Part shown: positions 33,850 to 60,400 of the stretch, piece by piece
Position numbering within the stretch: the first letter of the stretch is position 1
Layout of the letters: every line of letters starts with the position of its first letter
From: Cyanophora paradoxa CCMP329
Lineage: Eukaryota; Plantae; Glaucophyta
NCBI GenBank assembly: GCA_004431415.1
Contig: QPMI01000062.1
Span: forward strand, 434,001-498,000
Reading direction: 5' to 3'
DNA length: 64,000 nt
Notes under the pieces: model-generated
The model's database searches: none
What the model saw: only the letters and a program-made list of their open reading frames with translations
What the model was told of the DNA's origin: nothing
Made by a program: the position numbers and the translations under genes

Positions 33850-36800
33850 ATGATCATGAGGCAGCGATGTCGAAGATCCGGAAGCAAACAGCCCCCGCGG
33901 CCGTTATCCGCGCCGGCCGCGGGGGATCCCCACGCGCTCAAGCTTTCGGCCGCGGCTGCATATGCATGCGCATCAGCAGCCTCCGATTCGACGCGGTTTA
34001 CATGGCGTGCCGGCCCGTTGCTCGGCTTTCTGTTGCTCTTGCTCTCAGCACAGAGCGCGTTAGGGGCGTCGGCGTCTGGGGCGTTCTCGTGCTCTGGCAC
34101 TGGTGAGCGCGCGCCCTGGCCCGCCCGCCGCGCGAGCCCGCTGACGTGGTATCTCGTGAGCAGCTTCGTCCTGTCTTGTACAGTTCAAGTGAGGGCCCTC
34201 GCATCTCGCGCTCTTGCCCCGTGCCATCGCCGATGCCGCGCTAGCTATCATAGTATAGCGCTGACTGGCGGTACTCTGCGGCAGGACCGTCTGCGGGTCG
34301 GCCTCGGTCGCGGGGCTCACGGAGGGCTCTTGCAGTGGAGCGGCGAGGTTCACGTCCCCGGCGGGTGAGCCGCGCGGCGCTCCTGTGCGTCCGTGGGAGG
34401 GCCCGCCACGACTCGGCCCTCGCGCACAGCTGCCGCCTACGCGCCCTCCCGCTCCGCGCTCCTCGTCGCCGACTCCAACTCTATACGCGCCGTGTCGAAC
34501 TTCTCCTCCTACGCTCCAGGTGCCGCAGAGCTGCAGCGCCCCCCGCCCCCGCCCCCCCCCCCCCCCCCCCTCCTCCGGATCCCCCACGCCTTTCCCCGCC
34601 CATGATAAAGCCTACACTTCATGCGGCTTGCCGTTTCTCCCCACCACCCCGCCAACCCCTGCCCTGCCTATACCCCCTTCTCCGCCTCCATCCCCTTACC
34701 CCCCCCGCCCTCCCTTCCCCCCCCCCTCTCCCGGCCCCCCGCTTTCCGCCCCAACTACCACCACCGCCACCACCCTACCCGACCCTGCTCCCTGCTCCAG
34801 CTCCCCTCTCCTCCTCCCCCGCCTCGCTTTTCTAACGTTCCCCCCGCCGGCAGCCTCCTCGGCGCTGACGGTGGTGGCCGGCTCCCCGTCCGGCGCCTCC
34901 GGCACGACCGACGGCACCAGCGGCGGCACCACCGCCCGGTGCGCCCCCGCCGCCCCCGCCGGCCGCTCCGCCGCCTCCGCCGCGGCCGAGCGCGGCGGGC
35001 GCAGCTTCTCGGGCATCGCGGCCGTGGCATACGACGGGGCCGGGGACGCGCTCTTCGTGGCGGAGGGCGGGCGCAGCGCCCTCCGCCGCGTCGCCCTCGC
35101 CACGGGCGCCGTGACCACCTCGGCGGCGGCGGGGGCGATGGACAGCCCCGGGATGGCCCTCGCCCGCGGCCCGGGCGTCCTCTACGTCGCAGTCACGTAC
35201 AAGCTCCTCGCCTTCAGCACCGCCGGTCCCGCCCCCGACTCCCGCCCGCCCGGCCCCCGCCCCCGCCCTCGCCGGCGCTGACTGGGGGGCTCGACGTCGC
35301 AGCGCCGCCGGCGTACCAGGCGACGGTGACGGGGGCGACGCCCTTCTCGCTGCTGGGCCTCACCCTGCTGCAGCAGTACTGCGAGGACTCGGCGACGGCC
35401 TCGAGCGTGCGCCTCTCCGACGACACGCGGGGGATGGCGTACAGCGAGGACGGCCACGTGTACCTGCTCGACGCGCGCTGCGGCAAGATCCGCCGCGTCG
35501 ACGTCGCGAGCGGGGCCACCGCCACCTGGCTCGCCGACTCCCGCATCGGCAGCTCCACGGGCTTGGCCCTCGAGGCCTCCACGCGCGCCCCGCCCCGCCC
35601 CGCTTCGCCCCGTCTTCTCCCGCCCCCGACTGACCGGGCCGCGCGCGCAGGGGCGTCCTCTTCGTGGCGACGCAGGAGAGCGCGACGGTCCTCCTCACGA
35701 CCACGTACACGTCGGCCCTCTACTACGTCAGCATCACCAGGTCCGGGCCCGGCCGGCGCGCGGTGAATCGGGTCCAATTGCAAGGCTCACGCTCCGCGCG
35801 CGCAGCGCGAGCCCCGCGCTGACGCTCCTCGTCTCGACGAGCCCGCCGGCGACGGGCGACGGCTTCGCGAGCCCCGCGCTGAACAACCCGACGGCCCTCG
35901 CTGCCGTCGACGGGACGGCGCTGGCGTTCGGCGAGACGGGGGGCCGGGTCGTGCGCGTCGCGCGGGGCGTGCAGGCGCCCAACGCGCCGGCCGTGAGCGC
36001 CGCGGCGGCCTCGCCGACGAGCGTCGCGGTGGCCGTGAGCGTGGGCTTCGACGGCCTCCTCGAGCTCGCCGGCTGCACGGTCTGGGCCGCCGCCCCGGGC
36101 CGCTCCGCATCCCTCGCCCTCCCCGCCGGCACCTACGCGGGCACCCTCGCCGGCCTCGCCCGCGGTCCGCCCGCCCCCCGCCCGCCCCCTCGATCCCCGC
36201 CTCGCCGCTCATGCGGCTCGGGCGCGCAGCGACGACGTACTCCGTGAACGCGACCTGCTCGAACGCGCTGGGCGCAAGCGCAGCCAGCGCTACCGTCTCT
36301 GTTACAACGCCGGCGGACGTCCCCTCCGCGCCAACAGCAGCCGCCTCGAGCGTGGGCTGGGCGACGGCGACTCTCACGTGGACGGCCGGGGACGACGGCG
36401 GGGCCGCCCTGCTTGACTGGGCCATCGCGCTCAACGGAACGACAGTGGCGACTGTCAACGCAGGCATCCTTGCGTACACGCTGGACGCCCTGCAGGCGTC
36501 GACAGCCTACTCCGCAGCAATCACAGGACGCAACAGCGCGGGTTCAGGGGTATCCGCTACACTCACCTTCACAACGACAGCAGCGCCGACCCCGACGCCA
36601 AGCCCGAGCCCGTCGCCCAGCCCGTCGCCGACGGAGACGCCGAGCCCGAGCCCGTCGCCCAGCCCGTCGCCGACGGAGACGCCGAGCCCGAGCCCGTCGC
36701 CCAGCCCGTCGCCGACGGAGACGCCGAGCCCGAGCCCGTCGCCCAGCCCGTCGCCGACGGAGACGCCGAGCCCGAGCCCGTCGCCCAGCCCGTCGCCGAC

Positions 36801-39800
36801 GGAGACGCCGAGCCCGAGCCCGTCGCCCAGCCCGTCGCCGACGGAGACGCCGAGCCCGAGCCCGTCGCCCAGCCCGTCGCCGACGGAGACGCCGAGCCCG
36901 AGCCCGTCGCCCAGCCCGTCGCCGACGGAGACGCCGAGCCCGAGCCCGTCGCCCAGCCCGTCGCCGACGGAGACGCCGAGCCCGAGCCCGTCGCCCAGCC
37001 CTCGCCGACCGAGACGCCGAGCCCGAGCCCGTCGCCCAGCCCGTCGCCGACGGAGACGCCGAGCCCGAGCCCGTCGCCCAGCCCGTCGCCGACGGAGACG
37101 CCGAGCCCGAGCCCGTCGCCCAGCCCGTCGCCGACGGAGACGCCGAGCCCGAGCCCGTCGCCCAGCCCGTCGCCGACGGAGACGCCGAGCCCGAGCCCGT
37201 CGCCCAGCCCGTCGCCGACGGAGACGCCGAGCCCGAGCCCGTCGCCCAGCCCGTCGCCGACGGAGACGCCGAGCCCGAGCCCGTCGCCCAGCCCGTCGCC
37301 GACCGAGACGCCGAGCCCGAGCCCGTCGCCCAGCCCGTCGCCGACGGAGACGCCGAGCCCGAGCCCGTCGCCCAGCCCGTCGCCGACGGAGACGCCGAGC
37401 CCGAGCCCGTCGCCCAGCCCGTCGCCGACGGAGACGCCGAGCCCGAGCCCGTCGCCCAGCCCGTCGCCGACGGAGACGCCGAGCCCGAGCCCGTCGCCCA
37501 GCCCGTCGCCGACCGAGACGCCGAGCCCGAGCCCGTCGCCCAGCCCGTCGCCGACGGAGATGCCGAGCCCGAGCCCGTCGCCCAGCCCGTCGCCGACGGA
37601 GATGCCGAGCCCGAGCCCGTCGCCCAGCCCGTCGCCGACGGAGACGCCGAGCCCGAGCCCGTCGCCCAGCCCGTCGCCGACCGAGACGCCGAGCCCGAGC
37701 CCGTCGCCCAGCCCGTCGCCGACCGAGACGCCGAGCCCGAGCCCGTCGCCCAGCCCGTCGCCGACGGAGACGCCGAGCCCGAGCCCGTCGCCCAGCCCGT
37801 CGCCGACCGAGACGCCGAGCCCGAGCCCGTCGCCCAGCCCGTCGCCGACGGAGACGCCGAGCCCGAGCCCGTCGCCCAGCCCGTCGCCGACGGAGACGCC
37901 GAGCCCGAGCCCGTCGCCCAGCCCCTCGCCGACCGAGACGCCGAGCCCGAGCCCGTCGCCCAGCCCCTCGCCGACGGAGATGCCGAGCCCAAGCCCGTCG
38001 CCCAGCCCGTCGCCGACGGAGACGCCGAGCCTGAGCCCGTCGCCCAGCCCGTCGCCGACGGAGATGCCGAGCCCAAGCCCGTCGCCCAGCCCGTCGCCGA
38101 CGGAGACGCCGAGCCTGAGCCCGTCGCCGCAGCCGTTCAACAGTTCTCTCATGAACCGGCCTACTCCCTCTCCACTCCCTGTACTGAACGATCTCGGCGA
38201 CTCCCCCGCTGAACTCACGCCCGTCTCTCCGTCCCCCTCTATCCAGCTGTCTCCTTTGCCCCTGCCGGCATCACTCCCTTCTCCACTCCCCTCGCCCCCG
38301 CCGGCTTCCCGCCCGATCCCGTCTCCCATCGCCGCGCCCTTGCCCCAGCGAGAGGTCGCAGCTGCTGCGTTGCCCTCCGCCGGCGTGGCGGCTGCAATCG
38401 CCGAGAACGGTGCGTCCCGGCCCCCGCCTCCGCTGCCATATGCGCCCCCTGCCGTCGTTGCCATATGCTTTATGATCAGTTCCTCGCCCCGCGCAGCGGG
38501 CCCCGTGGGGACGTCCCTCTCCGTCGGAGCGGCCCTCGCGCTCGCCTCCTCCGCCGCCGGCGGGCTCCTCGGCGGCGGCGCCGGCGCCGCGGCGGCCTCG
38601 TCGGCTCTGGCGGCGGCGCTGGGGGCTTCGGCGTCGGGGCGGGGCGGGGGCGGCCTGGCTGCTGCTGGCGAATGTGCAGTGGGTGGCGATGACGGCGGAC
38701 ATGGACGCGGCGCTCCTCACGCCCGCCTACAAGGCCTTCGCCGACTCCCTCTCCTGGTCCCTCCTCTCCTTCCCGGGCTTCCCCATCCCCCCGCCCGCAC
38801 CTGCCCCCACGCCCGCCCCCGCCCCGGCGCCGGCTCGCCGGCGCCTCGCATCTGCTGCGGAGGGGCAGGAGGCGGAGGCGGAGGCAGAGGCGGCGAGGGC
38901 CCTCGTCCGCTGGCTCAACAACGCCGTCACGGTCCGCCCCCCGCCGCCGCCCCGCTGCGAACCTCTCTGACGTCCGCGCCCCGCCCCGTCCCCGCCCCGG
39001 CCCCCGCCAGACCCTCCTCCTGCTCGCAGCCGTGCCGGCCCTCCGGCCCCTCGCCACCGGCCTCGTCCGCGCGTGGCGCCGGCGCGCCGCGCGCCGCAAA
39101 GGCCGCGAGCCCGACATGACCGTACCCCCCGCCCTCTGCTTCCCCCGCACCGAGCTGCTGCTGGCCGTTGCGCTGTACCCCGGCGTCTGCCTGGCCTCGA
39201 CGGCCGTGTTCCGCTCGGGTACCCCCGCGCAGGTCGCCGCGGCCGCCGTCTACGTCGTGCGCTCCCACCCACCCCTCCCCCCCCCCCCCCCCTCCCCCTT
39301 CCGCCCCCTCTCCGCCTTCCCAGCTGACGTGCGGGGCAGGCGGTGCTGCCCGGGGGCTTCGCGGCATGCGTCGCCCTCTTCCTCGCCCGCCGCGTCGGCC
39401 GCGGCGGCGGCGCGCGCTTCGAGGAGGCGCCCCGCCCGCCCGGCCGGCGAGCCGGAGACGGGCCGGGGAGGGACGAGCTCGAGGAGGGGAGCGGGCGGGG
39501 CCGGAGCGGGCGCGCCACGCCCGGCGGGGCGGTCAAGATTCCCTCGGGGAGGCTAAAGGCCCGAGCCCCGCGCTGCAGCTGCGGGCGGCCGTGGCGGCCG
39601 CCCTGCGGCGCGCCGCCGCCGCCGCCGGCCCGTCGAGGGCCGCGGCGCGGCGTACGCGGTGGGGCACGACGAGCAGGAGAAGGGGGGAGACTCGAGCTCG
39701 GAGCCCGAGCCGCCCGCCGGTGGCTACGCCTCCGCCCCCTACGCCTTCCCGCGCCCGGGGCCCCCTGCTCGACCTGGCGGCCCCGCCGCCCCCCGAACCA

Positions 39801-41276: not shown

Positions 41277-42420
41277 TCACGCGTGGTCATGAGCGCTCGC
41301 TATAGCTGGCCGTGCAGCTGCAGGTGGCGGGGTGATCATGATGGCCGCGGGTCGACGTCGGAGCCTGATCATCGGATTATGAATCGGATCATCGGAGATT
41401 CCGGACCCGTGGTCGTGACTCGCGGTTCGATGCGTTAACTGGTAACGTTCGAGGACGTGGACATGATGATCTAGGGAGTATGTAGCTTTCAGGTTTAAAT
41501 TTGCCCTGCCCTAGGCCTGCCCCAGGCCACCAGGCCTCAAAGCACCGCAGCACAGCGCATGCAGATCTAGATCACGTGCCTCTATATAGCCGCTGAGCTA
41601 TGGCCATGTGCACGCCAAAATGGAGCTCGATCATCGCGATCGGATCGCAAGGCCCTCATGATCATGATCATGGCAAGATCATGATCAGGGGCCCTGCCAG
41701 GCTGCAGTGCCACATGCGCATGCCATGATGTCGCAGTGTAAATGCACGTGACGGTACAGTACTACGGTACTGACGGATCCGGAGCCCCGGGGGCATGATC
41801 AAATGCATGCATGATCATGAAGAAGCGCCTGAGCACTGTGATATCCCCGACCCCAATGACCGCATACGTACGTATACGTGTGTGATCGACTCCAGATCTA
41901 GATCTAGACTCTCTGAGATATGCTTCGAGCAACCACTCTGCGGCTCCGCGAGCTCTGGCTGCTTCTAGAGATATATCGATCTGCAGCTGAAGCCCCGGGG
42001 GTCTTCTAGAGAAATTCTCATGATCAGAGTCTGCCTGTTTCGCGATCGCGTTTTTTCAAAAACACCCGTGATCGTGAACATGATCATGACTCAGTGAGAG
42101 CTATATTAATTGCAATTGCAGTAAGATTTCAATAACAGGTACATAAGCATACGTATTGCTTTGCGGTCGATTTCAAAATGGCAAGGTCAACTAGGGAAGA
42201 CCTACACATGTGCATGAAAGCCACGCATACTATGATATGGCAAACTAGGGAAGATCTACACGCAAGAAAAAAGGACTGCACTATCGCCAGCTAGAGGGCT
42301 GTGCTTCTAGATTTTCAGCTTTAAAAGGTAAAAAGTTCAATACGCCTAGGCGACATAGACGGTAGCTCATATATGCAATTACTAAGTTAGAATAGGAACT
42401 TAGAAAGACTAGAAGCGGAT
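41271..42420. other. Lower-GC intergenic spacer densely packed with short perfect palindromes
   Basis: gcgtgatcacgc, catgatcatgatcatg, atacgtacgtat, agatctagatctaga, cgcgatcgcg, aattgcaattgca and many 6-mers. Confidence 0.85.
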
Positions 42421-45400
42421 TAAAGGTGGACGTGGATGGCGGGCGCGGCTGCCTCGGCGTCGTCCTTGCCGGCGGCCGTGCCGGCGGCAGCGGCGGCGGC
42501 GGCCGGCGGCTGCCCGAGCAGGCTGCCGCTGCCGCTGGCGCTGGCGCTGCCCCCGCTCGCGATCGACGCGGACCGGGAGCCCGAGAGGTCGATGAGCGAC
42601 ACGGGCCTCGCGGGGAGGTTCGGGATGGGGAGCGTCGCGCTCGCGATGTTGTACGCGTAGCGGGTGCTGGGGCCGGGGCTCACGGGCTGCCGGGCGGCCG
42701 ACGGGGGCAGGGAGACCATGGATCCGGATCGAGAGCGCGGGAGGACGTGCGCTCCAGCGCGGGGCGAGGTCGAGCTCGCGCCCGGGCCCGCCGCCGCCAG
42801 CGACACGTGCACGGAAGACGGGGAGAGCGGCTGCGACTGCAGGGCGCCCCTCGACGCGGGGCCGCCCCCGCCCTCCTTCGCGTCGTAGATGTCGATGACG
42901 CCGTCGTTGTCCAGGCTCTCGACGTTGCTCGTGCTCCACCGCCGGTGCATCCGCGGGGCCGCCGAGCCGGGTCTCGGGGGCGACGCGCCGCTCGGCCCGC
43001 TCGGCGTCAGGCTGCCGAAGGAGGCGGCGTGCGCCTTGAGCGCGCCGGGCGCCTGCGGCTTCGCGTGCCCCGCCTCGCTCGAGCTCGCGACGGAGGCGGC
43101 GGAGCTCGAGGAGCCCCCGAGCGTGTCGCGCGACGACTGCCGGCCCGCCAGCCGGTTCTGCGAGCCGCGCCAGCTTAGAGCTGCACAGTCACACGCAAAG
43201 AACGGAGTGGGATCGCACCTTCATGAAGTACTGGGCGGTGAGGAGGGCGACCGCGATCTGGCCGCCGACCTGCCGCGAGCCGCCCGTTCAGGTGGGGAGA
43301 GGGGCGAGGGGAGCTGCGGCGCGCGGACCCCGATGGCGGTCTGCGTGAGGGCCGACAGGTCCGCCAGCATGTCGGCGATGGAGGCCTTCACCTTGCGGTA
43401 CACCTGCCGCCCCGCGCCGTCAGCCGCCGGCGCGCGAGAGTCGAAGAGAGCCCCAGCGAGGCGCGCCATGACGTAGATGTTGTCGACGTTGAAGAGGACG
43501 CGGAAGTTCACGGACTCCCCGGCGCACTCGGGGTCCGAGAGCGGCTTCGTGAACGAGCAGAGGGCCTGGCGGCGGCGGGCGGGGCATGAGCGTAAGCACA
43601 ACCGGCCGCGGTCCTTGCGGCTGGAGACGCTGCAGAGACGCACGAAAGATGCCTCGCCCTTTTCGGTCGCCCGGTTGTCCGCGAGGCGCAGCGCCGCGTC
43701 GTACCGCGGTGTCCCGTCACGCTCGTCCTGCACGCGTTCCACCAACGTCAAAGCGCGGTCGGATGCTCGCGCGAGTGCCCAGGCCGTACCTCGAAGTGCA
43801 GCGGAAACAGAGACACGGGAACGGTGACCGGGGCTGTGCCGCGGAAGACGGAGAACTCGGCTTGCGAGGAGGGCACGATGACCCCCTCGATGGACAGGTT
43901 GGACGGGACCTGCGTGCACATCAGCGAGCGCGCGATTTCGCCTCTCTCGGCGCTACGGACGTGTATGGCGTAGTTGACGGCGACGGCCAACGCGAGGCGC
44001 GTCACGAGGCGGAAGTCGACCGTGACGTTGCTGGCCGCCAGCAGGCGGCACCTGCTGCAACGCCAGCTGACTCTGCACGCGCACGCACGCGTGAGGAACC
44101 GCAGCGGCGGCAAAGATCTAGACACGAATGGCGGGATGGACGGACAGGCAAGTGCGGCGAGAGGCGATGTAGCTCGCTTCGGCGGTGGGCGGGGGCGAGC
44201 CGTCGACGGGCCCGATCCCCGAGACGAACACGTCGACTCCGGCGCGCCCGTCGAAGCGGGACCGCGACGCGTTGCCGGCGCTCTCCCCAGCTCGTTGCAC
44301 GAGCTGGCAGGGGCCTGACCGCGGGCGACGCGCGTCAGAGAACGGCGGAAGTGCGGTTGGACGAGCGCGGTCGCGATCACCCGAGAAGCCGGTGAAGAAC
44401 GCTGTGACGTTGAGGGGGCCGGCGATGTCTGCCGCCGAGGGCGACGCCCCCGGCTGGAGCGTCTGGATGATGCTGAAGTTCGCGATGGACTGCGCACGAA
44501 TGTCAATTCACCGCCAAGGTCGGCGCCGGCGGCGCGGATCCGGATCGCGCGCGGCGCGGGGCGGAGCGCACAAACTGGAGGAGCACGTAGCCGGCGGCGA
44601 TGGCGGCGAGGCCGATGCCGACCATCGTGAAGACGACGCCGTACACCGTCGCCCGCTCCTCCTCCTCCGCCGCCTCTTCCTCCGCCTTCTTCGCGGCGTC
44701 GTCCGCGGCCGGCTCCCCGAGCTTGGCCTGCTGCTGCTGGCGCTTCGCGGCGATCTGACCCGTGTACAGCCGGTCGAGCTTCAGGATCTGCCGTGGCCAC
44801 CCGGCGCCCGCATTCGTTAGCAGGCGCAGCGTTACAAACGCTGGGCTGGCGTACACGCTCGGCTCGACGCTTCTTGCGCTCGTCGCGCTCAATGTGACGC
44901 TCCGAAGGCGCCACCGCCAGGGGGACCTGTGCGGGGTTCGTTCCCAAGAACGACATCGCGCCCGGCACCTCGCGGTCGTGTTGAGCGCACCTTCAAGTAA
45001 GAGTACAGGCACATGCCAGCGAGAATCAAAACGACGCCCACACACGAGACCAGCAGCGCGAAAATCTGCAGCGTTGCACAGTTTGCGAAATTACAACTAA
45101 GGTGAAATCTGGATCTGCGCTGGTCGTAAGCTCCGCACCCGGTAAAGGCGCTGCTTTGCGACCTCCTCCGTGCTAATTTCCTGTTGATCGAAAGCATCAA
45201 GGCATCATCTCCACGATTGACAAACAGCACTTGGGACCGCGCACCGGTCGGACGATGGTGGCCGAGTTTGTGTCGTATCTGCGTAACGTATTGAGTCACA
45301 ACGTGAACTTTCATGAGCACATATGCATGCAGCGATAATTTCGCACGTCACGTTCTCCCTCGTGAATTTCATCTCCTGCTCGTCGCTTGCGAGACGCTTG

Positions 45401-48400
45401 AAGAAGTCGCCAGCGCCCAGCAGCCGCCTAGTTGCCAGCAGGCCCCGCCGCCGCGCCGCTCCTGGCTGCGCGGGCTCCAGACCGGCGGCCGCCGCGGCGA
45501 GGGCGTCCGCGATGGTCTGCGAGATGAGCGCCTTGAAGTCGGAGACGTCGATCGGCTCGGACGTCGCGACGGGGCACAGCTGCGTGGACGAGCACGGGGC
45601 GCAGGCGGTGGATCCCGCAGTCGCCGCGAAGGTCCCGGACGGGCTGCGCAGCGTCAGCCCGCCGCGTGCAGGGGCCCGCAGAGCAGAGGCGCGGGCGGCC
45701 GCGGACCAGGGCTCGCAGTAGGACAGCGACGCGTTCCTGTAAGTCCCCTTCGCACAGACCTGCCCGCCCCGATCCATGATCAGCGCCGGGGCAAAACTCC
45801 GGCTAGCACCGCCTGACCTCGCAGAACGTCTGAGACTCGTCCGACTGGGGAACGGAAGAAACCAGTTAGCACTTGGACAGACAAACGAGCGCTGCGCGGG
45901 GCAGCGAGGCCAAAACAAATGCGACCCACCACAGAGCCTTCCGGACTGCGCAAATAAAAACACGGGCACGTGAGCGAACGCGATTTCCGAAGCACGAGGA
46001 GCATTGAACGCGACAGGGCAGCTCACCACACGGTGCAGCCGGTGGATCCCGCTTGCGAGATGGTGTTCAGGGGGCATTGGAGGCACACGTCGCTGCCCGC
46101 CGGCAGATACATCGACGAGGGGCACGGAAGGCACTCTGTGCGGCTCTCGTCCGATATCGATCCGGCAGGACAGCGGGTGCACGTCACGTCTGCAAGGCCG
46201 GTTCAGCAGGGATTCTTCAGAGCATGCGCAAAAGCATGATGTCGACGATCGTGAATCGAAAGTGCGGACCCCCAGCTGCTGAGGTCGTTCGGGGCGGGCA
46301 CTGTGCACACACGCCCTCGCTGGGGTACGTTCCCGCCGCGCAGTCTGCGAAGAGAAACGCGAGCATCGATATCCTGCGCATATATAGCTCGACAGTGAGG
46401 CTGCTGGCGCAAGCATACCCTTGCAGTCCGCGCGGTCGTCCCTCGGCACTTTCCCCAACGGACTGGCCCCCGAAGTCAGTTGCGAGTTCACGACCTCCGG
46501 GAACTGATGCACAGGCGCACCACTGCTCGCACTCGCCGGTGCCTGGTGACCGCGAGACGGTCCCAGGACCGCACGGAATGCACCCTGTGCTGTTGCTGTA
46601 CAGCGGCCTGTAGAAACCCTGCAAAGCGAAACAGGAATTAATTTCGAAAGGCAATAGAAACTGGCCATGGGACCAATTGAGAAAGCGCTAGCTGCGAGCA
46701 TTTCACAGCCGCACCATTGCGCAGGGCTCGCAAACGCGGCGGTTCGTCGATGCGGTGTACCCGGCACCGCATGGGGTACACTCGAATCCAGTTCCAGGAT
46801 CAGGCGCGATGAAGTTCTCGGGACACTGGAACGTTAACGGCCGTGTCACTCAGGGCACAGGCGACCGCCACGGAATCTTCAGATTGCCGCGCACCCTGAC
46901 GCAGGTCTGCGTGCCCTCCGCCATGAAGGTCCCTGGCGTGCACGGGATGCACTCGCTCGAGTCCTCGGACGCGTAGGAGCCGAGATCGCAGAGCTGGCAC
47001 GTCTGCGAGCCCGCCGGCGCCCACGTTCCAATGCGGCAGGGCAGGCAGATGTTCATGTTCCGCGGCTTGAACGTGCCCGCTTGGCACGCGGTGCAGCGCG
47101 TTCTGCGGGCGGGCGCGTCGGTGGAAAGTAGAGGGCGGTGTATGCAGTTGTTTCCGCAAAGAAAGCTCAATCCAGAATGCATGCGATTTATCTCGGGCGT
47201 TGGCTCACCGGTCGCCGTTCGAGATCTCGCCGGGAGCACACGACCTGCACTCGACTGCTCCCCGGTCTTCGGCAACTGTCCCCTCCTCGCAGAGCCGGCA
47301 TGTCCGCGTGCCGTTCGCCTCCGCAGACCCAGGAGAACACGGGAGGCAGGTCACGCGATCTTCGGTAGACTCGGTCCCTGGCGGACTGCGAGACGAGTTA
47401 GCGCTTCCAGAAGTATTGCTATGAACGTGCATTCGCACGCGGACCAGAGATCGCATTCGGCACGACCGGGCGCAGTGGCATAATAGGACTTGAAGCACGA
47501 GCGACAGACGGTGCCATTTGCAGGCCTTGCAGTACCGCTTGGGCACGGTGTGCAGGCTTGACGCGTCTCGTCCGCGACAAAGCCGGGCTCGCTGTGAAAC
47601 AAATCAATCGCAATATTATCGTCCCAAAGAATATTTATGAATGCATTCCGGGTCCTCACATACCATTCCTGACATGTAACCGATCCAAGTAGAGGTGCGT
47701 ACGTGTTTCCGACGCAGTCGCGGCACCGCCAGTCCCTCTCGTACGTGCCCCGAGGGCACGGGAGGCATGTCGCCAGGTCGTCGCTTGGGACCGTGCCTCT
47801 CGCGCAGACGGTGTAGTTTCTGGATGCTGCTGGCGCCGCTGCCCCTACCGGCACGCGCTGGCACGACAGCAGCGGCGCGTGCCTGTAGGTGCCCGCCAAG
47901 CACGCTGCACGGGGGCATCGTCAGCGTGCTGTCATCATTCGCGACCGTGCCGCGCATGGGCGCACGCGTGCAGCTCTGCCTGTCTGCCGCGGCCTCGTAG
48001 CCCTCCGGGCAAGTCTCGCACTGGTCCTTTCCTGGGTCGGACGTGATCGTGTTCGGCGGGCACGACAGGCACTGGTCCTCCAGCTGGTAGCTTCCCGCCC
48101 GGCATTCCACGCAGTCCGACCGGATCGCTGACGGTACCGTTCCGTTGCTGCACACCTCGTAGACGGCGGAGCCCTGCTTGGCGGCCGCACGGGCCGGCAC
48201 GGGGGTGCACTGAGACAGGTTCGCAGAGCGGTATGTGCCGTAAGGGCAGGGATCACAGGACTGCTGGTCGGCCGATGCCGCGTAGCCCGGGTCGCATGGC
48301 GTGCATTGCGCTGCGCCCAAGCTGCTCACGATGGAGTTCATCGGACACTGGAGGCAGCTGTCATCAAGTTGGAACAGGCCTGCAGCGCAGAAAATCAAAA

Positions 48401-51400
48401 TTTCGAAACGTGATATACATTGTGCAAGACCGGCGAGCCTGATGGGCACGGGACACAGGTGGCCTTAATTCCGTCCGGAACGTGGCCGGCCGAGCACATG
48501 GTATACTCCGACGACCCCTGCATGGCGGCGGCGCGCTTCGGGACGGGCGTGCAGAAGGTCATGCTTGCATTCCGCCACGTCCCGACGGGGCACGGCTCGC
48601 AGCTTTGCGCGTCCGCTGACGCGAACGAGCCCGGGCTGCAAGGACTGCATGCAAACGAGCCGGGTTCCGATGCGATGTGGTTGATGGGGCACGGCATGCA
48701 TCCGTCGCCGACCTGCCGCAACCCTGCACGAGGCGAATTGCATGAGACCTCGATTTCTCGTGCACGACAATCAAGAATATGCAACACGCGCACCGGCCGG
48801 GCAAGCAAGGCAGGAGGCTTTGGTCCCGTCAGGAACGAATCCAGGCTCGCAGATCGTGTAGTTCGAAGAGCCCGAGAGCGCCACCGCTCGCGCAGGCACA
48901 CCGGTGCAGACGGGCATGGAGCCGTGCCGATACGTGCCTGGATTGCATGCGACGTTGGAAACCGAACGACGTGCAAGCGCAGCCGAAGCAATACGCTCAC
49001 CGGCAGGGCACTTGAAGCAAAGTCGCTGATCTGCAGACGCGTATTCGCCATCCATGCAAGCCGTGCAGTTGGTTGAGCCGTCGAATGTTGCAATCTCGTT
49101 CTGTCCGCATGGAACACACTCGCCCGCCCCCTTACTCTCCGCGGTGCCCCCGCGACATGGCACACACGCCTGCTTCGACGTCAGCCAAACGCGCAGCGAG
49201 AATGCACCCAAGGAACGCCTCTCACCAGCCGATCCGGTGGCGACACGAAGCCAGCATCGCATTTTTTGCAACCGGTGCCGTCCGGCGACGCGTGATCTGA
49301 CGATTAATTGACGCTGTTCAGCGACACGGCGCGGGATAAATGACAGAAGCGTGCAGCGCACCATTTTCACAAATGAGGCAGATGCTTGCATTCGCGGGTT
49401 TTCCGTAGCCGGGTCTGAAAAGAGCGACTTCTCGGTACATGGGCGGACGGCTTTGAAAGGGCCCTCCTTACCTGCACCACATGCATTCGTCTTGCTTCTC
49501 GTTCGGGACTTGGCCCTGTGTACGGGCATCAGCTCCAGAACAGCGATACAAGCGCTTGCTGGTCAGGTGGGCGGTAATTGCAAGGCGTTGGCGTACCGCT
49601 GGACACTCTGTGCATTGCCCGAACTGCTTGCTTCCAGAGTACAGTGCAGTGGGGCATCGCTCGCAACCGCTACTCCGGTCGGGCTGGTAGTATCCTGGCT
49701 CGCTGCGGTGGATCGATGCGTGAATGAACGGCCGCGAGCTCAAGAGGTGTGTACGATGAGATCGCACCACGAAGTGCAGAACTGGCGCGTCTCGTCCGCA
49801 ACCGTTCCGGGCTCGCTGTGCACGAGAAGCACGTGAGATGAAGCCGAAACACGCTGCAGCGTGGCATTCGCATGTGTGGGCGAACCATTCGATGCAGCTC
49901 GTCATCGTCAGATTCGGCGCAATTGAATTGCCTGGGGCGAGCGTTATCGCGCGAATTCACACCAACCGCATGGAAGAGAGACAAAAGCACGCGCCAACGC
50001 AGTCGCGACACCGCCAGTCCCTCTCGTACGTGCCCCGAGGGCACGGGAGGCATGTCGCCAGGTCGTCACTTGGGACCGTACCTCTCGCGCAGACGGTGTA
50101 GTTTCTGGATGCTGCTGGCGCCGCTGCCCCTACCGGCACGCGCTGGCACGACAGCAGCGGCGCGTGCCTGTAGGTGCCAGCCAAGCACGCTGCGCGACGC
50201 GTCTCGTCAGCTTGCTGTCAACACTCACGGTTGCGCCGCGCATGTGGCGCACGCGTGCAGCTCTGCCTGTCTGCCGCGGCCTCGTAGCCCTCCGGGCAAG
50301 TCTCGCACTGGTCCTTTCCAGGGTCGGACGTGATCGTGTTCGGCGGGCACTGCAGGCACTGGTCCTCCAGCTGGTAGCTCCCCGCCCGGCATTCCACACA
50401 ATCCGACCGGATCGCCGACGGTACGGTTCCGTTGCTGCACACCTCGTAGACGGCGGAGCCCTGCTTGGCTGCAGCGCGGGCCGGCACGGGGGTGCACTGC
50501 GACATGCTCGCGGAGCGGTAGGTGCCGAAGGGGCACGGCTCGCAGGACTGCTGGTCGGCCGAGGCCACATAGCCCGGGTCGCATGGCGTGCATTGCGCTG
50601 CGCCCAAGCTGCTCACGATGGAGTTCATCGGACACTGGAGGCAGCTGTCGTCGAGTTGGAACAGGCCTGCAGCACGCGAAGTGAGAACCGCGCCGGCAAA
50701 CAAAGCGCGAACCGTTAAGCTATTCGCGATCGCTCACCTGCCGGGCACGGAACACAGGTGGCCTTAATTCCGTCCGGAACGTGGCCGGCCGAGCACATGG
50801 TATACTCCGACGACCCCTGCATGGCGGCGGCGCGCTTCGGGACGGGCGTGCAGAAGGTCATGCTTGCATTCCGCCACGTCCCGACGGGGCACGGCTCGCA
50901 GCTTTGCGCGTCCGCTGACGCGAACGAGCCCGGGCTGCAAGGACTGCATGCAAACGAGCCGGGTTCCGATGCGATGTGGTTGATGGGGCACGGCATGCAT
51001 CCGTCGCCGACCTGCCGCAACCCTGCACGAGGCGAATTGCATGAGACCTCGATTTCTCGTGCACGACAATCAAGAATATGCAACACGCGCACCGGCCGGG
51101 CAAGCAAGGCAGGAGGCTTTGGTCCCGTCAGGAACGAATCCAGGCTCGCAGATCGTGTAGTTCGAAGAGCCCGAGAGCGCCACCGCTCGCGCAGGCACAC
51201 CGGTGCAGACGGGCATGGAGCCGTGCCGATACGTGCCTGGATTGCATGCGACGTTGGAAACCGAACGACGTGCAAGCGCAGCCGAAGCAATACGCTCACC
51301 GGCAGGGCACTTGAAGCAAAGTCGCTGATCTGCAGACGCGTATTCGCCATCCATGCAAGCCGTGCAGTTGGTTGAGCCGTCGAATGTTGCAATCTCGTTC

Positions 51401-54400
51401 TGTCCGCATGGAACACACTCGCCCGCCCCCTTACTCTCCGCGGTGCCCCCGCGACATGGCACACACGCCTGCTTCGACGTCAGCCAAACGCGCAGCGAGA
51501 ATGCACCCAAGGAACGCCTCTCACCAGCCGATCCGGTGGCGACACGAAGCCAGCATCGCATTTTTTGCAACCGGTGCCGTCCGGCGACGCGTGATCTGAC
51601 GATTAATTGACGCTGTTCAGCGACACGGCGCGGGATAAATGACAGAAGCGTGCAGCGCACCATTTTCGCAAATGAGGCAGATGCTTGCATTCGCGGGTTT
51701 TCCGTAGCCGGGTCTGAAAAGAGCGACTTCTCGGTACATGGGCGGACGGCTTTGAAAGGGCCCTCCTTACCTGCACCACATGCATTCGTCTTGCTTCTCG
51801 TTCGGGACTTGGCCCTGTGTACGGGCATCAGCTCCAGAACAGCGATACAAGCGCTTGCTGGTCAGGTGGGCGGCAATTGCAAGGCGTTGGCGTACCGCTG
51901 GACACTCTGTGCATTGCCCGAACTGCTTGCTTCCAGAGTACAGTGCAGTGGGGCATCGCTCGCAACCGCTACTCCGGTCGGGCTGGTAGTATCCTGGCTC
52001 GCTGCGGTGGATCGATGCGTGAATGAACGGCCGCGAGCTCAAGAGGTGTGTACGATGAGATCGCACCATGAAGTGCAGAACTGGCGCGTCTCGTCCGCAA
52101 CCGTTCCGGGCTCGCTGTGCACGAGAAGCACGTGAGATGAAGCCGAAACACGCTGCAGCGTGGCATTCGCATGTGTGGGCGAACCATTCGATGCAGCTTG
52201 TCATCGTCAGATTCGGCGCAATTGAATTGCCTGGGGCGAGCGTTATCGCGCGAATTCACACCAACCGCATGGAAGAGAGACAAAAGCACGCGCCAACGCA
52301 GTCGCGACACCGCCAGTCCCTCTCGTACGTGCCCCGAGGGCACGGGAGGCATGTCGCCAGGTCGTCACTTGGGACCGTGCCTCTCGCGCAGACGGTGTAG
52401 TTTCTGGATGCTGCTGGCGCCGCTGCCCCTACCGGCACGCGCTGGCACGACAGCAGCGGCGCGTGCCTGTAGGTGCCAGCCAAGCACGCTGCGCGACGCG
52501 TCTCGTCAGCTTGCTGTCAACACTCACGGTTGCGCCGCGCATGTGGCGCACGCGTGCAGCTCTGCCTGTCTGCCGCGGCCTCGTAGCCCTCCGGGCAAGT
52601 CTCGCACTGGTCCTTTCCAGGGTCGGACGTGATCGTGTTCGGCGGGCACTGCAGGCACTGGTCCTCCAGCTGGTAGCTCCCCGCCCGGCATTCCACACAA
52701 TCCGACCGGATCGCCGACGGTACGGTTCCGTTGCTGCACACCTCGTAGACGGCGGAGCCCTGCTTGGCTGCCGCGCGGGCCGGCACGGGGGTGCACTGCG
52801 ACATGCTCGCGGAGCGGTAGGTGCCGAAGGGGCACGGCTCGCAGGACTGCTGGTCGGCCGAGGCTACATAGCCCGGGTCGCATGGCGTGCACTCGACCGC
52901 ACCAGGCGAGGAAGCTATCGCATTTATCGGGCATGGGAAGCACTCGTCGCCATCTTGATAGGATCCTGCAAACGAACAGTAAAATTAGAAATATGATGCA
53001 AGCGAGGAAGCACTTCTCGCTGACCGCCTCGGCATGGCGAGCATGTTGCTTTTGTGCCGTCAGGGACGGAGCCGGCAGGACAAGCCGTGTAGTTGGAAGA
53101 GCCAACGAGTGCAACGGCCTGGAAAGGCACGGACTCGCAGTTCGCCATCGCCCCGTGTCGGTAGGTGCCTTTTGAAAGAAGGCACAAAACATCAAGTCTC
53201 GAACGGAAAACAAGCTCTGAATTATAGTGGAGCTCACCAGCTGGGCAGTCGAAACACAGTCGCTGGTCTGCTGATGCGTACGTTCCGTCCGGACAGGCCG
53301 TGCAGTTCGCGGATCCTTCAAAAGGAGCGACCTCGTTCTGTGCGCAAGGAAGACACTCTCCGGGGCGACCATACTCCGCCGTTCCGGCCCGGCACGGTAA
53401 ACAGGCCTGCGAAAATAATTTAGCGGGTAAATAAAGAGCTTGCGGTCCGCAACGAGAGGGAAATACCTTCCTATCAGGTTGCGAGACGTAGCCGGGCCCG
53501 CACTTTTCACAGCCCATTCCGTCGGGAGATGCATAATCTGTTCGAAAGCCGCGAAGTCAAGAGGGGAGAGCTTCGCATGTAACCAGCCGCAAACGCTGAT
53601 GAGTAATGACCTTCATCACACAGCAAACAAACGATCTCGTTCGGTGGAACCCCGAAGCCGGGCCTGCACCAGGTGCATCCGTCCCTCTTTTCCGTCGTGA
53701 CTTTCCCCTGCCTAGGCGTGAGGTGGGGCACGTGGGGCTAACCAGAGCAGCTATCCACGAATACCGGCGGGCAAGTTTCGCAGGGACCAAAGCGCCCTGC
53801 TTGGGACCAGGTGCCGGCGGGGCACTCCTCGCATGGCGAGAGCGCCTCGGGCTGGTGCGTTCCAGCGGGGCTGCACGATTGCTCGTGGAAATGGAGAGTA
53901 TAGGAATAAGGCTTCTTGGAAGGACTCACCACGCCTCGCAGTTGCTGAGGTCGGTTGTCGGGTACGACCCGTCCGGACCTGGTATGCACTCATAATCGGA
54001 CAAAGACAGCGAATGCAGACATAAGAGAGGCCCAGCTATCCAGGAGACGCACAGCTCGAGCATGAACCAAGCGCGCCGCCCAAGCTGTACATATTTGACG
54101 GACATGGCACGCACGCCAGAGGCGTCTTCTCAAGATACGTTCCCGGGAAGCTGCACAACAGACGCCAGTCATGATCGGGCTTGCGGACGGAACAAGTAGG
54201 CACAAATAAGCGCACCATGGCACACATTGGAATGTCCATTTGGCCTGGGAGCTAGCTCGTCAGCGGAAAGCCCAATGAAACGAATCAAGAAACGCCGCAA
54301 CGCACGGAGGGGGTGAAGAGGTTGTCCTCGCACGGGAGGCAGGGGTCGCCGGCGTTCATCGAGAACGTGTGCTGCGGGCAGTCTGCCGAGCGCGGATCAG

Positions 54401-57400
54401 CGCTGCGCTACGGCTGCGATCGTGAGCCCAGAGGCGCAGAGCCGCACCGTAGCAAGCCGAAGCCCCGATGTCCGAGTAGGTTCCGGCCTCGCAGATGGCG
54501 CACTCCGTGGCGCCCGCTCCGCTGTACGTCCCGCTCGGGCAGCTGCCACAGCAAGTCCGATCAGACGACTCGGCCTACGTGCATGGTCGAGCACAGGCGC
54601 CAGCGCGCACAATTGAGCGTCTTCGTCGAGGAGAAGGCCTTCCCGCGACGAGTAGCGCCCTGGCAGAGAACGGTGCGTGAGATGCACAACTATCAAGGCT
54701 TCTGGAAAATCGGCACCAGCAGGCAAGTCGACACAGAGATCAGCGATCGCGACAGAGCGGTTGAATACGGCGGCCTGGTGAAGAAATAGGTTATTTGTGA
54801 CGTGAGATGGCAGAGGTGCTCGGGACTTCAAACTTTCCCGCATACGTACCTCCCAATTCCATCGAGTGCCGGGCGGGCAGTGCGAGTGCAGCTTGATCAC
54901 GTACGCCGGATCGGAAACCACAAATATCGCCTGTAGAAGTGTTTTCCAATCCGCCCGAAAACCCGGGAATCGAAATCCACTCTTACCCAAGGGAGCTCAG
55001 AAAACGGGATGCTCGGGTCGCTCTCAAACATCCGGCCGCTCGAGTAGTCGTCGACAACGGTCGCGTACAGCACGTTCGCCTGGCCGACGCTGACGTCAGC
55101 CACGAGCTAGAGCCACAGCGGACACAAAGGCTGCAGACCGGGAAGTTCGGCACAAGCACGGTGACTCTTACGCTGACGTCGCTGAATGCAGCGCTGTCGT
55201 CCACGTTTTCAAGGCGGATCAGCCGCGAGCCGGGAGCGCGCTCTGCAGCTCGCTTCATCCGGCGGCTGTGCACGTATCGCGGGCGCGTCTCGCGGTCCGA
55301 AGCAAACGTGAAGACGCGGGTGTTTGCTTGCGTGTGTACCTCCTGCACCACGCTGCGGCGAAAGGTTTCACGCTGCTGCGTCATAAGCGGGCACAGGGGA
55401 AAAGACGCACTACAGGTTTCCGTCTTTGTAGACGGCCGCCGCGACCTTGAACGTTTCACGCGACATGTCAGCTTGCATTATGTGAATTCAACAGCCAAAC
55501 GATCTGTTAACGTTTACCGAGGTCCATTCCTGCCTTGTGCCGCGCCAGTCCGCAGTCTTGTAAATCTGAACGCTGCCTTCGATGCTCGCAGCTGGGCTGG
55601 CCATGCCACTTTGGAAGGCGTTCGCCTTGAGAACGCGGATGACGCGGTCGCCGGTGACCCAGAAGCTGTACTTCGAGTTGGGCGGGTCGACCCAGCGGCC
55701 CTCGAGATACCCGTGGCCGAATCCCGCGTGGAGCGGGCGCTCGTTTTGAACCTGCACACCACGTCATCGATTTAAAGATGCAACTAGGGGGTAAATTGAA
55801 ATTGAGCACAATCCAGTGATCTGCAAATGAAAGCTGCTCGGAGCGAAGCACCCGGGGCGCCGTGTGGGTGAAGATAGCCGTGCGGTACGTGGGCGGAGCG
55901 GGGAACAACGGATCGAAGCTCCGCACGCCGACGGGCGCATCGACAAAGCGCGAGGGGTCCACTTCCCACGTGAACATGGCGATCACGTGTGTAACGGCGC
56001 GCGCCCCGCAGATGCCCGACACGAGCGGAGCGGGGCAGGCGCCGGCGACCGTCGCGTTGGGGAAGAATGGGATCCTGCGGCCATATGACTTCGTGGCGCG
56101 AAAAACGGACGAGTGAAGTATTGCTACCGCGGCGCACCGAACGATGGCGTGGTAAAGGATCGGCCCGCCGTCGGCGACTCGCCCATCGGTGTGCATGGCC
56201 TGCACGGAGGCGCCCACAGGGAACGAGTCGGCGAAGAAGGCGCCGTTCTCGTACGGCCACCTGGTGCACGTGCGTGCAGCTCAGCGCGCGGCGAGAGGGA
56301 AAACGGCCGACCACAAGGACGCACGGGACGCTCTTGTACACCGACTCCGCGGAGGCAGTGAAGCCTTCCGGGGCGATCGACGACAGGTCGAACCTGAGCA
56401 GAGCGACGCCCACCGGCAGCGAGCATATTTTGAGGAGCGGCACGACGGTGGGCTCGCCACTGCTCCGAAGCACGGCGAAGGAAGAGAAAAAAGCTACTCC
56501 GCGCTGCCAGAACTGGAAGAACTGGAGAGACAGTGAGTTAGAATTCTGGATGCATGCAACCAAGGTAGCTGGACGATAGAATGACACCTCAAACTCACCC
56601 GCAGCTCTTGCAAGAGGAGGGCGTCGAAGGACGCCAAATCGGGATACGCCCGCCTGACGTCGCTCGCCGTCTCGTTGCCCTCGAATGTACGGCCGGATGG
56701 CTCGGCATCGTAGAAGTCGAGGCAATTCGTGGCGCCTGCTCCCCAGTTAGCTTCGCGATCGTCGCGACAGAGGCACGCAGGACGGGAACGTGGACTCGCC
56801 GTAGAAGAAGTGGCTGCCGAAGGCCACTGAAGTCGACGTCTCAGCGCCTGGCGTGGCCCATGCGAAGCCGAAGAGCTCGGGTTGAAGGCGGAAGTGGCGA
56901 GAGCGGTGCTTCTTGATGTTTGCATTGCTCCCCGTCGGCTGTGACAAAGATTAGACAAACTTCGAATAAATTGCTCTTGGCATTCATTCAATCTCACCGA
57001 GATTGAGAAAAGATTCAGCGTACCCAGCATGCCAGCCCAATTGTACCTGCGCCGATCCGGGATAAACCAAAGCAGGAAATCGAACTGTTTCACGATCACG
57101 CACTCTTCAGTGGGGCTCGCGGAAGAGAGGCCGGAAACCTGTGACGAGTCAATTGTTACGCACGGCTTCCTCCATACGCATATCGAATGAACGCACAGCT
57201 TCATAGAATGTCCGCTCATAGGCGGCGTAGAAATGGCGGAAGTCATGAGCCCATGCCGCAGCTGAGCCCATGAAGTCGTAGGGTCCGGCGCCCGCACAGA
57301 GGCCGGCCGGCCAGCTTCGAATCGGCCCGTACGGAGCTGGCGTGCAGCTGCTGAACGCGTAGGCCGCCCATCGTTGCGCAGCGTGCGAGTAGCAGCCGAA

Positions 57401-60400
57401 ACCGACGCAGTCCGAAGGCGGGCGCAAGACGGCCGAGACGGTAGAGCCTACGAGATCGCTTGCGTTCGAGTACGCGTGCGGAGTCCAAGGCCAGTTGCTC
57501 TGCTAACGGATGAGCCGTTTGCGCATTTGAATCTTTTCACAGCGTGATCCGTACCTGGAACGCCGTGAGGTTGCTGGGGACAAAACGGGCGTCGCAGTCC
57601 TTGGCCGGCCACTGTGACGTAGAAGATTACGCGTCATTTAGTTGCAGCAGCTCGCTAATATTCATAGTTACCGGGGTCATGGATGAATAAGCGAAATCGG
57701 TGGGCTCGGCGTCGCCGAGCAGCTGGGGTGGGCGGACCAGAATCAGAGCAGCTTCAAATGCATACTCATCGACATTTATGCGGGGACTTGCACACATCAT
57801 CAAGCTTCTGAACGAAGGAGCAGCGGTTGCTGTCGAGATCGAAGTCGCAGAATGAGAATTCCGATGTGGTCCGCGTGATGAAACCGAGGCGGTGCGAGGC
57901 GGCGCGCTGCCCCACGAGGTAGTTTGCGAGCGGAGCGGCGAATACGATCTGAACGCTCTCCTGCGACTCCACCGGGTTGCCTGCGAAAATGCGCTTGCAA
58001 AAGAAATTTGCGTCCATAGTTTTCATCATCTACGCACCGACTCGGGAAAAGGCGTTGCTTGCACCAGTATCCCCCGACGGCATGAGCGCATTTTGCGCCG
58101 CAATCGAGTTTCCCTGTGTACAGTCAGCGGCTGACATTGCGAAAGCTCAATCGGCTCGAGAATAGTGTACCGCGGGGACGGTGACTGTAACGGCGGCAGA
58201 CGACGGGGACGCCTCGCCAGCGCGACCCAGTGCTTTCACGGAGCAGGAAACGACGTACGATCCACCGTACGAGAGCTCCACCGAGACGGACACAGCCGCG
58301 CCTGCAGCGTCTGCATCTGACACGGAAGCGGACCCCGCGTAGCCGCCTGGCGGAGCACTCGGCGCCATGCAAGCCGCGTCAAGAGTCTCAATCTCGATGC
58401 CTGCAGTGAAGTTCGCCGTGAGAACCACCGTCATTGGACCCGTGGACATCGCCGACACGATGAGGGGTGCAGGGGGGCCGGTCAAGTTGGCTGGCGGAGC
58501 TGCTGGTTCCGGACAGGGCACGGTGACATTCACATCTCCGACGAGGACGGCCGCAGGGATCTCGCCAGACGAGGAGGGGACCGTCCGATTCACCTGCGCC
58601 GAGGAACCGGCGAGCCTTAGCGCCGCGCACGCGCATCTTCGCGCATTCGCGATCGAACCGAGCAGTCCGGATCCGAGAACATGTATTCGACGACGAGGGG
58701 CGCGGGTCCCGAGAGCTGGGCGCTCGCGCTCGCGTACGCTAGCCGCACTTGGTTTGCAGAGAGCTCCGAGCTGTAAACACGGAAAGCTGAGCGAAGGGAT
58801 CAGTTACGAAACACGAGCCGATTGTGGGATAATTTCACCGCCAATGGTAGCGTCGAGAATGTACGGATCATTCTGCAAAAACACGGAACACCAGTTTGTT
58901 CGCTATCCAGTGCGTCGAAATGACCGACATCGAAAACAAAAGAGTAGCTTTACCTGGTAGAACGACCTCCCGATGGACGCCATGGACCGCAGAATCGACG
59001 CCAGGGGCGTGACGGATCCCGTGGCAATCAGCAAACCGTTCTTGTAAGCCCGAGCAGGAGACCGCCCCGTCCCGTCCGGGGCGCCGTACGTGACGACGAG
59101 GTGAGTCCAGCGCTGGAGCTGCATGCATGCGAGACGCGACGTTAATGGCGCGCTTCCACGCAGAAAGCAACGCGACGATGAGCATTGCACGAGAAAGATG
59201 CTCGGACCGGCACGAAAGACGTGTTGTGGGCGGCGCCGAAGCTCCCTTGGAATCCGTTCTTGTTCTTGGTGTTGTGGATCATCAGATATCCGTCCTTGCC
59301 TGGGCACGCGCAGCCCGCGAGATCGCACGGGCAGTGGTACCAGTACTGTGAGAACTGAGCACATGCTGCAAACAAAAAGGATGCAGAACCAGCGGACCGT
59401 CGAGTCCTGCGGGTCAGCTCCAGTCATGGGCGTGGGCTGCGTGATGTCGATCCAGCGGCTGGAGTTCCTCGGCATGGAGTTCGGATAGATCCACGACTGT
59501 ACACATGTAAGCCGTCAGATTTTGATGGGACTATAGCTCCAATGAAAAGTGAGGGGCTCACCTCAAAAGAGAGTGGATACACCAGGGTACGACTCGCAAA
59601 GAAGCTGCTCATATCCAAGTACCGCTGAGCCGTGGCCCCTCCCGCTGTGCCGAAGCGAATCCCTGATGGAAAAGGTAAAGCGTTGCGAAGGGGGGAAACA
59701 TCACCGATGATCAGGACTGAAGTTACCTGTGGAAGGAGGGGGGCAAGCCATAGCAATGTCGCCGATCAATTTTCCGGAGCGCCCCCGGCCGCTCGAGTCG
59801 GGCACGTTCTTGCCAGACAGGAGGCTCTCGGACTGCGCCAGGGAGGAGAACTCAGCGGGCAGTACTAGTGTGGCCGAGCACGAGGCGGCTCGACCGGGCT
59901 CACGGTGCTCCCGCAGCTGTCCAGCTTGTAGTAAAGCTCGACGGGCGCGGCCGGCTGCACGCCCTGGAAGGCTTCCGCGACTTGCCCCTCCGTGAGCGCC
60001 GACGAGTGAACACGGAACCCTTGCCGCCGCCAAGTCATTCGATCGGGCAGGAGTGCGATGCGATTTACTTCGTCAAGAGCGCACCAGAGTAGAAAACGTC
60101 CGAAGGGCTCCCCGGAGCGGTCCACCAGCTGCGTCCTATCCGCAGCTGAGACCTGAGGATCTTCGTGACGGCCGGCCCGGCCGCCCCGGACCGCGCGTGG
60201 GCCACGAGGGTGCCGTTGCGGTAGGTGCGGATCTCGGTGGGGGTGAAGACGACGGCGAGGTGGTGGAAGAAGTCGTCCTTCGGCACTGCGCTGGCGTCCC
60301 TGAACGCCACCGTCTCGTAGTAGGACGCCGTCGTGTTGTAGAGGGTTATGACCAGCGCCATCCCCGTCACGCCCGACGTGCTCTGCGCGCAGCGTTCCAC

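Follow-up and report, generated by a model that had tools for sequence, protein, structure and literature searches.

A predicted three-pass membrane module joined to a Cys-rich ectodomain in an expressed gene family of Cyanophora

The DNA analysed here, which we call the window, is a GC-rich (60–80%) stretch of 64,000 nucleotides from Cyanophora paradoxa CCMP329 (contig QPMI01000062.1, positions 434,001 to 498,000), whose minus strand carries a gene for a membrane module with three hydrophobic segments on the Kyte-Doolittle scale. We find that this module belongs to a real, expressed gene of a family of at least ten paralogs encoding large Cys-rich (Ephrin_rec_like, LamG) surface proteins, and that it is fused to a Cys-rich Ephrin_rec_like ectodomain in one gene. 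An earlier note on the same DNA had proposed a giant ectodomain fused to a channel module of the DEG/ENaC/ASIC type. The reading we favour, with a probability of about one half, is that the module is an orphan, lineage-specific three-pass module of a surface receptor or adhesion sensor.

Expression was assessed with contigs from three sequencing runs that behave as RNA (X1–X3), aligned to window positions 42301–48300. In these contigs many short stretches of 58–96 nucleotides are skipped, flanked by CT..AC as written on the plus strand and so by GT..AG as read on the minus strand; none of these skips appeared in a DNA run. Reading the three minus-strand frames against the RNA joints yielded an exon chain with the splice donor consensus GTGCGC. 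Several introns are stop-free and have lengths divisible by three, so that long open frames run across them.

A public gene model – EukProt EP00741 Cyanophora paradoxa tig00000241_g21034.t1, here P0001 – is 808 amino acids long, 99% identical to the window gene and maps onto 45777–42423 of the minus strand. Its exon chain agrees with ours: a first transmembrane helix (TM-A), a charged linker, a second helix (TM-B), a loop, ...NIYVM...VYRKVKASIADMLADLSALTQTAIG-VGGQIAVALLTAQYFMK and a 245-residue tail. The features of the gene, each with the evidence that places it, are as follows.

45347–64000, minus strand: ectodomain-coding exons upstream of the module (Pfam matches, RNA joints within 42301–48300, frame continuity).
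63193–62810, 61613–60858 and 60481–60068, minus strand: Laminin_G_3-like stretches (Pfam).
45278–45245 and 45180–45139, minus strand: juxtamembrane exons encoding YDTNSATIVRP and EISTEEVAKQRLYR (RNA edge 45347, donor 45138, P0001, conservation in paralogs).
45065–45003, minus strand: TM-A, IFALLVSCVGVVLILAGMCLY, in exon 45065–44991 (IFALLVSCVGVVLILAGMCLYSYLK) (RNA joints, hydropathy).
44926–44855 and 44787–44653, minus strand: charged cytosolic linker, the second part being the first part of exon 44787–44572 (RNA acceptor 44926, P0001, alignment).
44652–44572, minus strand: TM-B, ATVYGVVFTMVGIGLAAIAAGYVLLQF (hydropathy, paralog alignment, paralog RNA).
44489–44381, 44314–44146, 44072–43961, 43909–43789, 43727–43644 and 43565–43467, minus strand: outer loop, in six exons (RNA joints, P0001).
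43403–43329 (VYRKVKASIADMLADLSALTQTAIG) and 43269–43219 (VGGQIAVALLTAQYFMK), minus strand: last strand and third helix (TM-C), with a 59-nucleotide intron between them (P0001 and paralogs P0004, P0012 and P0013).
About 42420–43157, minus strand: last exon, encoding a Ser/Ala/Pro-rich cytosolic tail of about 245 residues and ending with the stop codon (RNA contig, third-position GC content 0.93, tail alignment).

Within the module, the RNA contigs contain GT..AG joints at 45138/45066, 44990/44927 and about 44380/44313–44315. RNA joints flank the TM-A exon on either side in two runs, and one contig is unbroken across 44787–44599. Two contigs span several of these features: record 2 of X1 connects the 42-nucleotide exon, TM-A and the linker to TM-B, and record 9 of X2 links exon 45510–45347, by way of the two juxtamembrane exons, with TM-A and the linker. 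The linker itself is interrupted by an intron (44854–44788) and bears a conserved KLDxLY motif. A paralog RNA contig supplies the joint at the end of TM-B (about 44571–44582/44489–44490), and the joint 43962/43910 in the outer loop was likewise seen in paralog RNA. Further downstream, an unbroken contig over 42301–43157 stops precisely at the 43157 acceptor of the tail exon, a part of the gene that the earlier note leaves undescribed.

The order of TM-A, charged cytosolic linker, TM-B, Cys-containing beta-rich loop and TM-C given in the earlier note thus holds in the RNA joints, in P0001 and in nine paralogs. Most of its splicing was also borne out; P0001 and the paralogs, however, splice out the stretch VRLCSVSS...ARRRQ (43643–43566) as an in-frame intron, and the 63-nucleotide segment 43466–43404 between NIYVM and VYRK, which has a GC donor and whose 21 residues are kept in P0001, is removed in paralog models and paralog RNA. 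The paralog P0013 (tig00000475_g1238.t1), which reads NIYVR-VYRK at this point, keeps the equivalent of another in-frame intron of the module, as P0001 keeps one. Retention of the stop-free, in-frame introns at 43466–43404, 43643–43566 and 43960–43910 would add 17–26 residues to the outer loop and keep the frame, and such retained forms are candidate alternative isoforms.

We do not count the odd RNA joints 43108/45487, 45507/44658 and 43329/42639 as splice forms of this gene: they are artefacts of GC-rich, low-complexity sequence or fragments of paralog contigs. Contigs of P0013, whose depth is about sevenfold that of the window gene's own (~34x vs ~5x), partly align to window 43329–44582 and imitate odd splice joints; at the end of TM-B the two genes differ by synonymous changes only, both reading LLQF. 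An Rfam scan of the window gave no match.

The fusion to the ectodomain is documented by a series of upstream RNA joints (47966/47904, 46895/46825, 46714/46617, 46521/46462, 46419/46344, 46270/46189 and 46027/45845). At the last of these, 46027 is joined to 45845 in all three RNA runs through inserted letters that correspond to a 16-nucleotide micro-exon (45945–45930), with which the frame reads ...GCTV-CPEGSV-SDESQTFCE-VCAKGTY.... RNA joints and open frame together connect the module to upstream Ephrin_rec_like exons, with RNA covering up to 48300. Because the joints and the micro-exon carry the frame upstream, the annotated start of P0001, MDRGGQ (45777–45763), falls inside an intron; P0001 is thus N-terminally truncated and lacks the ectodomain, and our analysis corrects this public gene model.

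Three paralog models (P0006, P0007 and P0013) have the same organization, with 250–770 residues of Ephrin_rec_like repeats immediately before the same module. In the window, the ectodomain contains many Ephrin_rec_like/TNFR-like Cys-rich repeats followed by a conserved stalk (QLCPVATSEPIDVSDF...), and more Ephrin_rec_like exons together with the three Laminin_G_3-like stretches lie farther upstream on the same strand, beyond the RNA-covered 48300. Both domain assignments exceed the curated Pfam cut-offs in open reading frames of the window (PF07699 at 37–43 bits against 23.1; PF13385 at 31–43 bits against 27.6), and PF07699 reaches 104–115 bits in P0006 and P0007. The giant ectodomain of the earlier note is thereby confirmed for its Cys-rich part, by RNA and frame and in the three paralogs; its LamG part is placed upstream by Pfam, on the same strand. 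The ectodomain-coding region also contains a tandem duplication, 48418–50622 and 50717–52921, whose copies of an Ephrin_rec_like exon block are ~98% identical with a period of 2299 bp; either the exon block was duplicated very recently, or the assembly has produced an artefact here.

To define the family, we ran phmmer with the most conserved piece of the module (window 43329–43727, minus strand; 133 residues, reading through an in-frame intron) against 1.84 billion representative proteins. The relatives recovered – P0001, P0003–P0007, P0009 and P0010 – are all from Cyanophora; word searches extended the set by P0012 and P0013 alone, again Cyanophora paralogs. Three other phmmer matches were rejected as repeat proteins that resemble the query by composition. 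Searched by words against proteins of 73–233 amino acids, the 133-residue exon piece gave no relative; a scan of JGI metagenomes with the family alignment gave none either, and ESM Atlas features for the exon piece (≤0.84) were uninformative. By sequence, the ten known relatives (P0001 of the window gene and nine paralogs) are restricted to Cyanophora in the databases searched. The fusion of the module to Cys-rich repeats recurs in P0006, P0007 and P0013, and no relatives were found outside Cyanophora.

That nine paralogs conserve the pattern of the module makes it more than chance. Paralog alignments place the strongest conservation in TM-B, TM-C and the distal loop, the last with the pattern DGxPRYDxALRxADNR...SFxLCSxT...ECAGExVxFR; loop and TM-C hold 25 invariant columns. 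TM-A has a 19-residue Kyte-Doolittle mean of 2.77. TM-B keeps the Gly/Ala-rich pattern GxxFxxxGxGLxxxAxGY, a Gly-zipper, across the family. TM-C is polar and strongly conserved, has two conserved Asp at its outer end, reaches a hydropathy of just 1.4–2.0 and is followed by an enrichment of Lys and Arg. These features predict a three-pass topology with ectodomain and stalk outside, linker inside, loop outside and tail inside.

The charged linker spans 70–130 residues and the outer loop 220–252, somewhat longer than the ~200 of the earlier note. Six Cys are conserved in the loop, with five or six in each full-length paralog loop; N-glycosylation sequons occur in the window loop, and one sequon position is common to 7 of 7 full loops. 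From the alignments and the models described below, the loop is probably a disulfide-bonded, glycosylated beta-sandwich. The tails of the window gene, P0004, P0012 and P0013 conserve ARMxRRRSNSF, IDIYD, SRYAYN, LPIPNLP and an I-H/K-L terminus; the first of these motifs appears to be of the basophilic-kinase type, and the terminus could be a sorting or PDZ-type signal.

Relationship to known channels was examined by sequence. A Pfam scan of the module that included ASC (PF00858) and P2X (PF00864), in a release that appears older than the one naming PF27811 (a family considered below), gave no family at E ≤ 10 for any open reading frame, any exon or 10 of 10 paralog modules. Two profiles were searched against all PDB sequences, one of the whole module (A2) and one of the last strand and TM-C (A5), and neither retrieved an ASIC, ENaC, P2X or PAC chain at E ≤ 10. 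For A2 the top match was PetM, a chance transmembrane match; for A5 it was sphingosine-1-phosphate receptor 2 (S1PR2, an unrelated G-protein-coupled receptor) at 13.9 bits, and a PTPRN2 fragment and a prenyltransferase also appeared. Membership of the module in DEG/ENaC/ASIC, P2X or PAC was not detectable by these searches; all that it shares with them is the layout of transmembrane helix, beta-rich ectodomain and transmembrane helix.

We also obtained two AlphaFold2 monomer models, one with P0001:236–575 as first row (A2) and one with P0012:126–436, a clean paralog model, as first row of ten (A3). Both open with a long N-terminal helix that leads directly into a strand; about a dozen strands make up the middle, and a hairpin precedes the long helix at the C-terminal end. 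The TM-C helix was modelled at residues 271–302.

As an orphan receptor or adhesion-sensor module, the protein would work as follows. When the large ectodomain moves or binds a ligand, the signal would travel through the stalk and TM-A to the beta-sandwich next to the membrane and to the closely packed pair of TM-B and TM-C, which is rich in Gly and Ala and probably oligomerises. The output would be a change at the phospho-regulated tail, possibly with ion flow.

Several observations weigh against this proposal. The two polar, Gly-rich transmembrane helices are very strongly conserved, which is more typical of channels or transporters than of passive anchors and so favours a channel. The hydropathy of TM-C is marginal in the window gene (1.4), and the case for its membrane insertion comes from the paralogs and the flanking charges. 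Confidence in the models is low, with a mean predicted local distance difference test score (pLDDT) of 49.6 for A2 and 55.2 for A3, and the most conserved stretch of the loop is unmodelled. Finally, the single-transcript evidence reaches 48300, and the LamG stretches lie beyond it.

The foremost alternative, which we consider possible if not likely, is that TM-B, loop and TM-C form a trimeric pore of the PAC/ASIC type, with TM-C lining it, the loop acting as palm and TM-A tying the giant ectodomain to the gate. PAC is trimeric with a pore lined by its second helix (PMC9351481, PMC8809534), and PAC and ASIC are themselves alike in architecture without sequence similarity (PMC8809534, PMC9351481); the missing sequence and profile signal speaks against a PAC-type pore. 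In Foldseek searches against PDB, PAC (ASOR, TMEM206) and not ASIC ranked first for both models, and the match improved with the better model, from E = 8.9e-3 (probability 0.72) for A2 to 4.8e-4 (0.98) for A3, for which about 20 PAC entries stood among the top 50 over ~340 columns. The PAC ectodomain is near the loop in size and is likewise beta-rich between two transmembrane helices per subunit; the strand straight after TM-B, the hairpin into TM-C, the polar TM-C with its outer Asp pair and the Gly-zipper of TM-B would also suit such a pore.

The PAC matches have TM-scores of only 0.24–0.31, however, at a root-mean-square deviation of ~15 Å, and rest chiefly on the two terminal helices. Non-channel receptors, too, are most commonly built as transmembrane helix, sensor domain and transmembrane helix. 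Our reading is that the likeness to PAC may reflect this shared helix, beta-domain, helix layout, which is rare among single solved chains. Selectivity of the PAC anion pore is set by a lysine in its second helix (PMC9351481); the TM-C helix has no internal Lys, and no residue-level alignment to PAC exists. The structural comparison suggested by the earlier note, carried out here on monomer models, gave PAC as the best match, at low TM-scores. P2X chains were absent among the Foldseek and VIA-align matches listed, and a fold search of the Atlas (TM-score ≤ 0.33) returned nothing informative.

Taken to its full extent, the same idea would make the gene a glaucophyte-specific receptor-channel fusion, in which an extra transmembrane helix couples a LamG/Ephrin-like ectodomain of several thousand residues to a trimeric two-helix pore of the PAC/ASIC type, unrelated to both in sequence, so that sensor and gate lie in one gene. 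This we regard as doubtful.

Less probable is a third reading, in which the module is part of a broader protist family, so far undescribed, of free-standing proteins of ~400 residues with two transmembrane helices (PF27811, Y80K_N) and became fused to a receptor ectodomain in Cyanophora. It stems from language-model features of the P0012 module (126–436), whose first matches scored 0.93 and 0.92 with 197–199 of 256 features shared; 23 of the 30 nearest clusters carry PF27811, and their members are membrane proteins of 370–412 residues from Ciliophora and Haptophyta. These are feature matches without alignment or E-value, on a scale whose calibration is not for protein parts. The phmmer search described above, moreover, matched Cyanophora alone, and precomputed Pfam lists were empty for P0012 and held PF07699 alone for P0001. 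Our search for literature on PF27811 found none.

Genuine, if very divergent, membership in DEG/ENaC/ASIC is highly improbable: the module has the predicted topology of that family (two helices, cytosolic ends, a large Cys-containing outer domain) and ASIC1a occurs within the Foldseek top 1000, aligned over both helices, but the ASC model misses every exon and all ten modules, unrelated proteins lead the profile matches, the alignments contain neither the HG motif before TM-B nor FPxVTxCN after it that mark the family, and the loop has six conserved Cys against the larger set of ASIC and is about 130 residues shorter. The kinship asserted in the earlier note is therefore not upheld. Its likening of KASIADMLADL...GGQ to the beta12-TM2 register of ASIC1 has no statistical support, since the A5 profile of this segment retrieved no ASIC or ENaC chain. 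It was right that the G/SxS (GAS) filter is not conserved: TM-C reads AIGVGGQIAV (IQVGSTLVL in P0006), and no member has a GAS-type triplet.

Among known systems, receptor-channel fusions of the polycystin-1 type also link a huge multi-domain ectodomain covalently to a multi-pass module. Polycystin-1 differs in its 11 transmembrane helices, its GAIN/GPS site and its TRP-like channel domain; nothing of the kind was seen in the Cyanophora module. Surface proteins of the Ephrin_rec_like/TNFR-like kind (PF07699, PF23091) resemble the Cyanophora ectodomain, whose repeats reach Pfam cut-offs. To our knowledge, such proteins end in a single transmembrane helix, with or without a kinase, and none combines three membrane passes with a second outer domain at this end.

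Elsewhere in the window, the plus-strand gene at 36211–38212 begins with an FN3-like part and continues with perfect repeats over about 600 residues, throughout which all three frames stay open. From its sequence it looks like an extensin or a wall protein of the hydroxyproline-rich glycoprotein type.

Cyanophora holds a key place among early-branching photosynthetic eukaryotes, and next to nothing is known of its surface signalling. Should the module form a pore, it would represent a third independent sequence family of the ASIC/PAC architecture and the first outside animals with a giant extracellular tether of its own covalently attached, and would offer a compact model for the coupling of outside force or ligand binding to a two-helix gate. 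Should it not, the genes described here, at least ten in number, would still constitute an expanded, expressed and lineage-restricted receptor family of Cyanophora.

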